Source of the DNA: Selaginella moellendorffii
Lineage: Eukaryota > Plantae > Lycopodiophyta
Direction: 5' to 3'
DNA length: 64,000 nt
NCBI RefSeq assembly: GCF_000143415.4
Contig: NW_003314279.1
Coordinates: 62,001-126,000, forward strand
Below are positions 57,264 to 62,292 of this stretch, piece after piece (the first letter of the stretch is position 1; each line of letters starts with the position of its first letter). Under the pieces are notes generated by a model, which was given only the letters and a program-made list of their open reading frames with translations, made no database searches and was not told where the DNA came from. Made by a program: the position numbers and the translations under genes.

Positions 57264-58335
57264 CTAGGTTACAATGGTGCTTTTGTCAACGTTCATTTGT
57301 TCTTGGGTTTCTTCGTCAACCTTTACTGCGTCCTCGTACTTTATTTCTTCCCATGAACAGGAGAATCTCCACACCGACGCACAGTTCTCCAGCTCTGTGG
57401 CATCAAACTATACCATCAGCAATGCGATAGAGAGATGGTTTCTGAGGTGGCTCTTTATCATCGTCTTTGTCCTCGAACCTCCGAGCACCAGAAGTTGGTT
57501 TTCTACCTGAGGCTGCGTGAATGCAGTGAATTCACCAGTTCGAAGACCGTAGAAACGATCACCGTCCTGCTGGTTTGCACCGAGAGCACTGGATACGAAC
57601 AGAAAAAACCGGGATTTGAGGAAAATTCTAATCTTTTTGTTGTATCCACAAATCAGCCTGCGAACTGGTCAAGCATGGAAAACCATATCAGATATCTTTT
57701 TACCTGTTACGGGAAGCGTTAAAGGTGACGGATAATCCTGCTGTAACTTGCTCTAAAGCTGCAGCGGAGCTACAAACAGGTAAAAACACTAAATCTACAC
57801 TGTGCTAGACAAAAAACTTCAAGCCCAGTGGCAGCATTGCATAGATGAACTAGATGATCCTGTGTTATAGTTGCGAAAACATAAATTAACAGATCTACAA
57901 GCCTTAGTATAAAACAAGCCCTAGAGATTAACACGAAGAACTTGTGGCAACCATGTGAGGATACCGCAAAACTCGTACAGTCTCTCCTTCCGACACTGTC
58001 AATGACGAGACAAGTGGATCTACAATCAAGCCGATAACTTACATGCATCCACAAGCGTTATATCAAAAAATCGACCGCACAAAGAGAAGAACACGAAAAA
58101 AATATGGACTTACAGATCGAAAATCCTGAGCCTCTTGTCCTCGTTGCACGTCAGAAAGCACGAGCCATCAGGAGATCTGCAAGAGAATGCGTTAGAAATT
58201 GCGTAAAACAACGTAGAAATGCAATAGAAACTTCTTTCACTTGACACCCTTGAAAAAATTGTTGTTGCTGCCATCCAGCCGGAACTGGCGATGCAGATAG
58301 AGTCTGTGTGGCAGAGGATCGAAATGCCTGCGAGG
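57264..58335 (-). pseudogene. WRAP53/TCAB1 (WD40) pseudogene, copy 1
   Basis: Pieces 'NNFFKGVK', 'SPDGSCFLTCNEDKRLRIFDL', 'YPHMVAT', 'TSGARRF', 'ENCASVWRFS'. The splice donor after GVK is broken, and there are frameshifts and internal deletions. Confidence 0.8.
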
Positions 58336-58400
58336 GATCTCCCCTTGCCCCTTGCACTCCCGGGAATTGTGCTCCTCAAGGTCGAGAACTCTGGATCGCT
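58336..58400 (-). pseudogene. Degenerate fragment of the last exon of the DnaJ-zinc-finger/Trp-rich gene
   Basis: 58336-58400 (GGATCTCCCCTTGCCCCTTGCAC..TCCTCAAGGTCGAGAACTCTGGATCGCT) aligns with 61635-61712, with indels. Confidence 0.7.
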
Positions 58401-60499: not shown

Positions 60500-61530
60500 T
60501 TCTGCCGTACTTAGAGAACTGAACATGTTTGACTTAGCAGCTTATAGATAGACTCGAAGGGAAGCGAGGAACTATACTTGAGTGAGGCCTTCCTCGTGTC
60601 CTTGCAGCACATATAGAAGCTCCATGTTTGCCTTCGTTGTACACTGCTAAGGTTCAATCCTAAGAACCAGCCCCAAGAAGATTTTGTCTGATGTCCGCTA
60701 AAAGCTAGGCACGACACAATTCCTGCAAGAGCTACTTTTGTTACTCTAAGTCGAAAGACGATCACTCTTCTTTGGAACTCGTTGGCAGTGACGACCGGGG
60801 CATAAGAAATTCTAATCTTTTTGTTGTATCCACAAACAGCCTGCGAGCGCCAGGAATGGGCAACCATATCAGAAATCTTTTTACCTGTTACCCGCAGGAT
60901 TAACAATGCTGCTGTAACTTCAATTGTAAGCTCTGGATGATCCCGCGTTGCAGTCGCGAAAACACAAGTTGACAGATCTACAAGCAATCAAAGCCTTACT
61001 GAAATTCAAGCACAAGAGATTAAAATGAAGAACCTGTGGCAACCATGTGAGGACCAGCAAAAATCGTACACAGGCTCTCCTTCAATGACGAGACAAGTGG
61101 ATCTAAACTCAAGCTGATAACTTTCATGTTCCAGGAAAAAATCTACCGAGCAAGATCCTCGGCTTCCAGAGCGTTTGAAGGCCTGAAGCCACAAACGTTA
61201 CACCACGAAGAGAAGAACAAGGAAGAAAAACCACAAAACCTAGTGGACTTACAGATTGAAAATCCTGAGCCTCTTGTCCTCGTTGCACGTCAGAAAGCAC
61301 GAGCCATCCGGAGACCTGCAAGAGATAGAAATTGCATAGAACAAGCTATAGGCCCAGTGCATAGAAACGCAATGGAAACTTCTTTTCTTTTCTTTCTCAC
61401 CACTTGACACCCTTGAAGAAATTGTTGCCGCTGCCATCCAGCCGGAGCTGGCGATGCAAGTGATAGAGCCTCTGCGGCGGAGGATCGAAATGCACGCGAG
61501 GGCACCACAGATACGAATGCGGCGCCGGCG
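60500..61530 (-). pseudogene. WRAP53/TCAB1 (WD40) pseudogene, copy 2 (3' truncated)
   Basis: 'FDPPPQRLYHLHRQLRLDGSGNNFFKGVKW|SPDGSCFLTCNEDKRLRIFNL', 'EGEPVYDFCW' followed by a frameshift, 'STCVFATATRDHP' followed by a deletion, then 'CGYNKKIRI' and 'GIVSCLAFS'. Confidence 0.8.
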
Positions 61531-61569
61531 CCAGGCTAAATTTTGGGCACACTATCAACACACTATCAA

Positions 61570-62292
61570 TCACACATCGATGATCTGGAGCTCCTTGCTG
61601 CTGCTCATGGACGATCCATCACAACTGGGGCACTGGATCTTCCCCTGCCCCTTGCACGCCCGGCATTTGGGCCCCGAATTCCGCTCCTTGAGGTCGGAGA
61701 ACTCGGATCGCTGGAGCCACCCCATGCTCCAAAGCTTGCGATCCTGGAAATTTGGGAGAAGATGAAAAAAAAAACCAAGAATTCGATGGAGAAATCCTAT
61801 TCTTACCCGGAGATTTTGCGCATTCACCCACAGCTGGGTGGTGGTGTCACAAGTGGCCACCATTTGGACGAACCATTCCTTGTCGCTCATCCGCTGCTTG
61901 GCTCGAGCTTCGTAGTGGCGCCATCCAAAAGTGCGCTCCATGGCTGTCCATTTGGATCCTGGAGACTCGAGACAAAGATTGGCAACAAGATCGATCACAC
62001 CCAATTCACTCACCGACAACGCGGGCCATGTCGACGGGATTTTTGCGGTGGTATCCTCCCAACGCGAGCGTGCCTCGGCCCTCGCATTGCTCGCATGCCA
62101 TCTCTCCATAGCCTACAAGTCTCGGTTTTGAAGGTGAACTGGCCGGAAATAATTCATACCTTTGCAACATCGGCAGGGGAGTGGAGGATACGCATCACTG
62201 AGCGGTTTCACAAATTGCGAGCAAGATTTTTGGTTGCTGCTGCTACAGGACCTGATAGGAACAAGCGACCAGCAGGACCTCAAGCTCTTCAT
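61570..62292 (-). CDS. DnaJ-type zinc-finger protein with inserted TIGR02450/DUF2389-like Trp-rich domain, 4 exons, putatively plastid-targeted
   Basis: Exons 62160-62292, 62014-62112, 61807-61958 and 61570-61743 splice to 185 aa: CRCCKGYG..CEQCEGRG..'GSKWTAMERTFGWRHY..VQMVATCD..WVNAQNLRDRKLWSMGW'..CRACKGQG..CPSCDG. Confidence 0.8.

Follow-up and report, generated by a model that had tools for sequence, protein, structure and literature searches.

The 64,000-nucleotide (nt) stretch of the lycophyte Selaginella moellendorffii analysed here (contig NW_003314279.1, positions 62,001 to 126,000 of the forward strand; referred to below as the window) carries on its minus strand, at 62292-61570, a gene of four exons, the product of which, obtained by reading the reverse strand and splicing by script, comprises 185 amino acids (aa). 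Judged by its motif layout, this product is a DnaJ/BSD2-type double zinc finger without a J domain, consisting of four cysteine pairs, in which a complete DUF2389 domain takes the place of the hairpin between motifs 2 and 3; the identity and the architecture of the protein are regarded as near-certain. The parts of the gene, given in window positions, are as follows:

62160-62292, minus strand: exon 1, with the ATG at 62290-62292; encodes a 26-aa Ser/Arg-rich, presequence-like N-terminus, then the conserved FVKPL..YP block and the start of motif 1 (C40 at 62175-62173); spliced contigs extend to 62304
62113-62159, minus strand: intron 1, 47 nt, GT..AG; joint 62111/62159 in all four runs
62014-62112, minus strand: exon 2; encodes the remainder of motif 1, the whole of motif 2 (C51xxC54xGxG, 62095-62072) and the linker LxxGGYHxxNPV, which is conserved
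61959-62013, minus strand: intron 2, 55 nt, GT..AG; joint 61957/62013 in all four runs
61807-61958, minus strand: exon 3; encodes the first three quarters of the DUF2389 barrel (GSKWTA..GWRHY..ATCD..WVN)
61744-61806, minus strand: intron 3, 63 nt, GT..AG, in frame and stop-free; joint 61742/61806 in all four runs
61717-61956, minus strand: DUF2389/TIGR02450 domain, residues 79-137; the span includes intron 3
61570-61743, minus strand: exon 4; encodes the last barrel strand (WSMGW), a linker helix, motifs 3 and 4 and the C-terminal tail ending in IIDV, followed by TGA
61665-61642, minus strand: motif 3, C155xxC158xGxG, in exon 4
61632-61615, minus strand: motif 4, C166xxC169xG, in exon 4
61572-61570, minus strand: stop codon TGA
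61411-61569, minus strand: 3' untranslated region (UTR), minimum length; contigs run past 61400

The start codon is fixed by an in-frame TGA located 18 nt upstream of the ATG. Since intron 3 is in frame and free of stop codons, the naive open reading frame (ORF) 62109-61570 (179 aa) reads through it. The spliced translation is letter for letter that of RefSeq XP_024532659.1, "uncharacterized protein LOC112346931" of S. moellendorffii. Fully spliced contigs were found in four runs belonging to four studies; in them the three introns (63, 55 and 47 nt) are missing to the nucleotide, the borders being CT..AC on the plus strand. That the four runs are of RNA is a guess, but the removal of three canonical introns demonstrates the origin of the contigs from mRNA. 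Intron 1 is retained in some low-depth pieces of one run. LOC112346931 is an expressed, correctly spliced nuclear gene of S. moellendorffii; a chance ORF or a retro-copy is ruled out by the three canonical introns spliced out in RNA-derived contigs and by the existence of at least 88 homologues. The splicing script, the RefSeq entry and the spliced contigs thus agree on the four canonical exons and the 185-aa protein proposed in the initial annotation, and the junction support which it had called for is present at all three junctions in contigs of the four studies. One point needs correcting: RefSeq already predicts exactly this protein, labelled uncharacterized, and the gene, being annotated and Pfam-tagged in public databases, is not a new one. 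One spliced contig, 2889 nt long, runs on for about 2150 nt past the 3' border of the examined stretch (61400 and below); the extension is either a long 3' UTR or the result of joint assembly with the downstream neighbour.

The DUF2389 insert and the surrounding zinc finger

Two hidden Markov models (HMMs) match the insert over their full length and above their curated cutoffs, namely Pfam DUF2389 (PF09493; 65.7 bits, E 5.7e-18, cutoff 25; residues 79-137, profile positions 1-60 of 61) and TIGR02450 (54.1 bits, cutoff 36.85; residues 78-137, profile positions 2-60 of 61); the standalone form of this family is Synechocystis Ssr2843. Plant inserts are identical to the free cyanobacterial proteins at 40-49% of positions; over 11 cyanobacterial and four eukaryotic sequences, 17 positions do not vary, among them five Trp, K, R-H and C-D; the Trp-rich signature (GSKWTA, GWRH, C-D, W, W..GW) is also kept in a 64-sequence alignment. 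Scanning one genome per prokaryotic species for the motif [VIL]GSKWTA[MR][EA] yielded 10 loci, all of them cyanobacterial and coding for free proteins of 76-117 aa. A word search with the domain alignment returned 1208 matches of 42-133 aa, and all named ones among the best 120 were cyanobacterial; one of these 120 is labelled 'Ssr2843 homolog'. The ssr2843 product has been listed as a cyanobacteria-specific signature protein, hypothetical and 87 aa long (PMC2823733).

These results bear out the initial assignment of the insert to TIGR02450/DUF2389 as well as the statement that the domain normally stands alone. The Selaginella form differs from the free cyanobacterial proteins (76-137 aa) in being embedded in a zinc finger, and from Ssr2843 in being eukaryotic, nuclear-encoded and interrupted by introns; moreover, the GGYHxxNPV linker preceding the domain is conserved in the fused family and absent from the cyanobacterial proteins. 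Whereas TIGR02450 describes free-standing proteins of approximately 60-120 aa, the domain here occupies residues 78-137 of 185 aa and is flanked on both sides by finger motifs. On these sequence grounds, the Selaginella protein is a DUF2389/TIGR02450 member at the domain level and not an equivalog of the free protein. Among cyanobacteria, a cluster of 125 proteins in the ESM Atlas (representative, 197 aa) shows Pfam matches to DUF2389 together with His_biosynth/Dus (TIM-barrel) and may represent a second, prokaryotic fusion of the domain.

The finger motifs surrounding the insert are C40xxC43xGxG, C51xxC54xGxG, C155xxC158xGxG and C166xxC169xG, DUF2389 being located between the second and the third, which is the order of two motifs, an insert of about 60 aa and two further motifs that had been read from the sequence initially. 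Nearly all of 60 homologues keep the four motifs at their canonical spacing; seven of the eight cysteines (C40, C43, C51, C54, C155, C158 and C166) do not vary, and the eighth, C169, is kept in at least 90%. For the Selaginella protein and six orthologues, Pfam gave no J domain at E<=1. A profile of nine family members matches BSD2 (9ci1, E 5e-6; 6ekb, E 1e-4) and EMB2737 (E 7e-4) in the PDB. With the fingers of the DNAJE class, BSD2, PSA2, LQY1, OR, CYO1 (SCO2) and ZnJ6, the protein shares four CxxCxGxG-type motifs arranged in two pairs with a spacing of 7-8 residues, and with BSD2 and the J-less plastid fingers also the lack of a J domain, the small size and the presequence-like N-terminus. 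It differs from BSD2-type fingers in the segment between motifs 2 and 3, which is a short hairpin in the latter and comprises about 95 residues, including a complete foreign domain, in the former.

The conservation of the finger cysteines, together with the invariant C114-D115 and H92 of the barrel, would also suit a redox switch or thiol-disulfide enzyme instead of a holdase. In such a protein, the Zn-Cys centres would release zinc on oxidation and, with Cys114, act on disulfides of a client by oxidation, reduction or isomerisation. Release of zinc on oxidation occurs in Hsp33, and has likewise been reported for LQY1, CYO1 and ZnJ6. The last of these, a J-less finger protein, has oxidising activity (PMC7865324). 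However, the free proteins of cyanobacteria, which lack a finger, show C114 to be no less invariant, and a thioredoxin-like fold is missing. We consider a primarily redox-active enzyme unlikely.

An AlphaFold2 model based on 60 homologues reached a mean predicted local distance difference test (pLDDT) score of 80.1, with values >90 for most of residues 40-60, 71-80, 91-130 and 151-170. In the DnaJ finger (1EXK), motifs 2 and 3 share one zinc, hence the insert should emerge at the distal zinc site. The two finger halves (residues 36..183) superpose, in the model only, on BSD2 (6ekb_A; Z 4.7, 59 of 62 residues, 30% identity) and also align to anti-TRAP (2bx9, Z 4.9); they are predicted to re-join beneath the barrel as in BSD2. 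The suggestion that the domain had been grafted into the loop of a DnaJ-like finger agrees with the profile match to BSD2 and with the predicted model. The insert itself is predicted to fold as a five-stranded SH3/Tudor-like barrel of about 60 residues. VIA-align placed residues ~66-144 of the model among small barrels of this type (Z 4.8-6.4, root-mean-square deviation (rmsd) 2.0-3.5 Å, 53-65 residues), Z values which, all of them being middling and <8, the program rates as possibly reflecting a common arrangement. The best match was the N-terminal domain of CarD (4l5g; Z 6.4, rmsd 2.0 Å, 57 residues), and further ones included CarD 9e7v_M (Z 5.5), VapX, the RDM15 Tudor domain, NdhS 6a7k (Z 4.8), the Tudor domains of PcrA/UvrD (5dma, 7egs, 9dqs, 7egt) and the KOW domains of Spt5 (4zn3, 5ohq, 9j0n). 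A fold search of the Atlas returned only the protein's own family and small proteobacterial barrels. The predicted five-stranded barrel is what the insert has in common with CarD, UvrD/PcrA Tudor, KOW, NdhS and DUF1653 domains; with 2-16% identity there is no detectable sequence relationship to these, the scores lie in the range of generic fold resemblance, and DUF2389 alone has the signature of Trp, Cys and His.

The CarD N-terminal, PcrA/UvrD Tudor and Spt5 KOW domains being the top structural neighbours, the barrel might bind nucleic acid or RNA polymerase, in the manner of the Tudor-like polymerase-contacting domains of CarD, UvrD/PcrA and Mfd or of KOW domains. It would then dock on RNA or on a polymerase of cyanobacterial type, and the finger would serve as a structural clamp; the invariant K, R, H, R and Trp residues look appropriate for a ligand that is anionic or aromatic. 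Nevertheless, histone-reader Tudor, chromo and SH3 domains and NdhS score alike, the Z values of 5-6 falling in the common-arrangement range, and sequence similarity to CarD, Tudor or KOW domains is lacking. Moreover, angiosperms keep the plastid-encoded polymerase, yet have no detected DUF2389-finger protein. A role at the polymerase appears quite improbable.

Distribution and descent of the fused family

A word search with a nine-sequence alignment, non-exhaustive and confined to proteins of 102-324 aa, returned 88 proteins, nearly all of them with the same two-plus-two layout of Cys pairs and a fixed spacing of 27 residues from motif 2 to the barrel. They derive from chlorophytes (Chlorella, Micractinium, Nannochloris, Picochlorum, Coccomyxa, Volvox, Pleodorina, Astrephomene, Chlamydomonas incerta, C. 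schloesseri, Edaphochlamys, Raphidocelis, Monoraphidium, Scenedesmus and Tetraselmis), streptophyte algae (Klebsormidium, Spirogloea), liverworts (Riccia, Calypogeia), mosses (Sphagnum, Ceratodon, Physcomitrium), lycophytes (Selaginella, Diphasiastrum), ferns (Ceratopteris, Adiantum) and gymnosperms (Ginkgo, Cryptomeria). The search overlooked Mesotaenium and Chara and did not list C. reinhardtii. An exhaustive HMMER search found 781 representatives at E<=1e-3, of which 79 remained at E<=1e-30; the library searched consists of nameless entries clustered at 50% identity, and members were named through 20 look-ups, which added Mesostigma, Chlorokybus, Mesotaenium, Closterium, Chara and Flechtneria. 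The family members looked up are annotated as 'hypothetical' or 'uncharacterized' throughout. The fused form spans chlorophytes, all grades of streptophyte algae, bryophytes, lycophytes, ferns and gymnosperms, whereas no member from angiosperms or Mamiellophyceae was present among the homologues named by the word search and the look-ups from the HMMER set. Angiosperms, in contrast, retain BSD2, PSA2, LQY1 and OR. The survey of homologues accords with the initial suggestion that angiosperms may lack the protein, and it shows the fusion to be ancient rather than a peculiarity of Selaginella. Marine metagenome matches were considered as possible Mamiellophyceae; the one examined is ~80% identical to Nannochloris, a trebouxiophyte, and this candidate was rejected.

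A tree of the domain separates 52 eukaryotic from 124 cyanobacterial sequences by one branch, with a Shimodaira-Hasegawa-like approximate likelihood ratio test (SH-aLRT) support of 100; the tree is unrooted, the sample being composed without a non-cyanobacterial outgroup. From the phyletic pattern, which is the only source for the direction of transfer, we infer that the domain descends from the endosymbiont. The tree of finger plus barrel recovers chlorophytes versus streptophytes and mirrors the species tree; within streptophytes, Mesostigma and Chlorokybus branch first, followed by the other streptophyte algae and then by the embryophytes. Since the gene tree follows the species tree, it indicates a single ancient fusion, vertically inherited since before the split of chlorophytes and streptophytes.

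A divergent, long-tailed subfamily occurs in marine metagenomes (P0261, P0262, P0267, P0289, P0298, P0329) and in one record of the pelagophyte Pelagococcus subviridis (EukProt). Its members carry the motif GTNWTA..GWRHFEA, deviate in the fourth Cys motif and have a C-terminal tail of >100 aa that is rich in Lys, Arg and Glu. This pelagophyte-type subfamily falls outside the green clade (support 80/80 and 89/86). The fusion thus probably extends beyond green plants, as judged from the one Pelagococcus record; if that record is not a contamination, the fusion is present in an alga with a red-derived plastid.

The genomic surroundings of DUF2389 were compared for 15 cyanobacterial loci, from which no link to a photosynthetic pathway emerged. 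In four loci of Thermosynechococcaceae/Synechococcales (L003, 4892-6213; L004, 1598-2901; L008, 4910-6213; L009, 4907-6219), the free DUF2389 gene lies directly downstream of a gene for a 357-364-aa AAA_26+DRTGG protein (similar to the N-terminal part of Pta). The start of the DUF2389 gene overlaps the stop of the AAA_26+DRTGG gene by 4 nt in three of the four, and in L009 it lies 3 nt after that stop. This arrangement suggests translational coupling of the two genes. At least in L003, a convergent SUI1 gene then follows. A pentapeptide-repeat gene is located divergently upstream of DUF2389 in four other loci of Leptolyngbya/Alkalinema type (L005, L007, L016, L017), with TPR in L005 and L007; a 254-aa ORF at the same position in L006 is a candidate for the fifth case. 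Single loci show petB-petD upstream or DUF4079 immediately upstream.

The phyletic pattern raises the question whether the DUF2389-finger family and its free ancestor Ssr2843 are accessory factors of a cyanobacterium-derived function which angiosperms have discarded. The best phyletic match is the dark-operative protochlorophyllide reductase, DPOR (ChlL/N/B), whose oxygen-sensitive Fe-S subunits the protein might, for example, help to mature or to protect; this would be a special case of a plastid assembly factor. The nuclear 'yellow-in-the-dark' loci of Chlamydomonas, which are required for ChlL accumulation, are to our knowledge largely uncloned, and if the connection to DPOR were true, this family would be among the candidates for such a locus. 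The family reaches from chlorophytes to gymnosperms, with no angiosperm or Mamiellophyceae among the named matches, and the distribution of chlL/N/B follows the same pattern: angiosperm plastomes lack the genes (PMC7650654), as do Micromonas, Ostreococcus and Monomastix, and they are present in Chlorella, Coccomyxa and Pleodorina (PMC4337275), three genera that carry both chlL/N/B and the DUF2389-finger family. However, the pattern is not unique to DPOR, since PsaM, Psb30 and Rpl21 (PMC7650654) and flavodiiron proteins (FLV; PMC12344627) were also lost in angiosperms. A version of the argument that turns on FLV meets the observation that tobacco expressing FLV needs no extra factor (PMC12344627). 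Moreover, chlL/N/B never adjoins DUF2389 in the 15 cyanobacterial loci, and the absences are soft, because the word search, non-exhaustive and limited in length as it was, failed on Mesotaenium, Chara and C. reinhardtii. A dedicated role in DPOR biogenesis or in another discarded function is accordingly rated as improbable.

Within the Selaginella genome, two further copies were observed. At 58335-58400 on the minus strand, tblastn, inspection of the sequence and blastn revealed a degraded relic of exon 4, with 73% identity over 79 nt. It adjoins a copy of the 3' flank (blastn; 57915-58336 versus 61007-61502, ~70% identical). In this duplicate, 57915-58400, only the last exon survives, besides ~420 nt of 3' flank, and by its sequence it is a pseudogene fragment from a local duplication. 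A second locus on another scaffold, LOC112347072, encodes a protein which is identical at 183 of 185 positions (99%; R5K, E55D) and is probably the other haplotype in the assembly. The neighbouring ORFs of the window gave zero Pfam matches.

Proposed function and significance

On balance, the evidence tips slightly towards a protein that acts in the plastid as holdase or assembly factor and binds its partner through the barrel, a proposal drawn by analogy from the known J-less fingers. The short Ser/Arg-rich presequence would direct import of the protein into the plastid, where it would act as an ATP-independent holdase or assembly factor like BSD2, PSA2, LQY1, OR and ZnJ6, possibly with thiol-disulfide activity besides. 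The barrel would serve as the specificity module, binding the same conserved partner or ligand as free Ssr2843 does in cyanobacteria, and its putative binding surface would be formed by the invariant residues K80, W81, T82, R91, H92, C114, W121, R130, W133 and W137. The assembly of Rubisco and of thylakoids is known to involve J-less finger chaperones (PMC7865324).

The eukaryotic proteins begin with extensions that show no conservation and have a median length of 56 aa; their acidic residue content is 5.6%, as compared to 8.6% in the mature part. In Selaginella, the extension comprises 26 aa, 35% of which are Ser/Thr, and contains no acidic residue; D33 is the first acidic residue of the protein, just as the initial annotation had noted. 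This composition is compatible with an organellar presequence, plastid and mitochondrion not being discriminated. From the unconserved, acid-poor extension together with the phyletic pattern, we infer localisation in the plastid. A protein of mitochondria or cytosol, restricted to algae and non-flowering plants for reasons unrelated to photosynthesis, is rather implausible: the extension of just 26 aa, the composition of which cannot separate plastid from mitochondrial presequences, and weak matches to the AtTam37 zinc-finger model would be in line with it, but all named members are from photosynthetic eukaryotes, the family that donated the domain is a signature protein of cyanobacteria, and the closest finger relatives of known structure are the plastid proteins BSD2 and EMB2737.

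Several results weigh against the proposed plastid chaperone function. A mitochondrial or cytosolic location is also compatible with the data. The Pfam model BSD2_CRD scored 25.2 bits, that is, below its cutoff of 27, and DnaJ_CXXCXGXG, the other model against which the spliced protein was to be checked, stayed under its gathering score (~11 bits versus 32.7 on the C-terminal piece, no match at E<=1 on the whole protein); both Pfam finger models remain below their cutoffs because the insert splits them. The structural resemblance of the barrel to known domains is of the middling degree given above, and Foldseek found no match in the PDB at E<=1e-3. The free cyanobacterial domain, when modelled alone, gave a poor model with a pLDDT of 63.7, as compared to >90 inside the finger; order in the free protein may depend on a partner or on oligomerization, or the difference may be an effect of the alignment only. 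Furthermore, no neighbour is universally conserved over the 15 cyanobacterial DUF2389 loci, and thus no partner is named by them.

Searching the literature for DUF2389, PF09493, TIGR02450 and six gene identifiers returned nothing relevant, and for ssr2843 only the list of signature proteins and a cloning note were found. The initial description of the product as an uncharacterised factor stands insofar as no paper was found that describes the architecture, the family or the gene identifiers; in the literature searched, the replacement of the distal finger hairpin by a whole foreign barrel is an undescribed combination.

J-less DnaJ-type fingers form one of the main classes of factors that assemble Rubisco, photosystems and carotenoid enzymes, each being defined by its client. 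The family described here is as old as the green lineage, strongly conserved, transcribed in Selaginella and apparently never studied; its apparent loss in angiosperms would explain why it escaped screens centred on Arabidopsis. As a hypothesis, this loss links the family to DPOR, flavodiiron proteins, PsaM and Psb30, the few cyanobacterial functions which disappeared at the base of the flowering plants. With Synechocystis on the one side and Chlamydomonas, Physcomitrium and Marchantia on the other, tractable knockout systems exist for both the free and the fused form, and the family provides a eukaryotic handle on a universal cyanobacterial signature protein.

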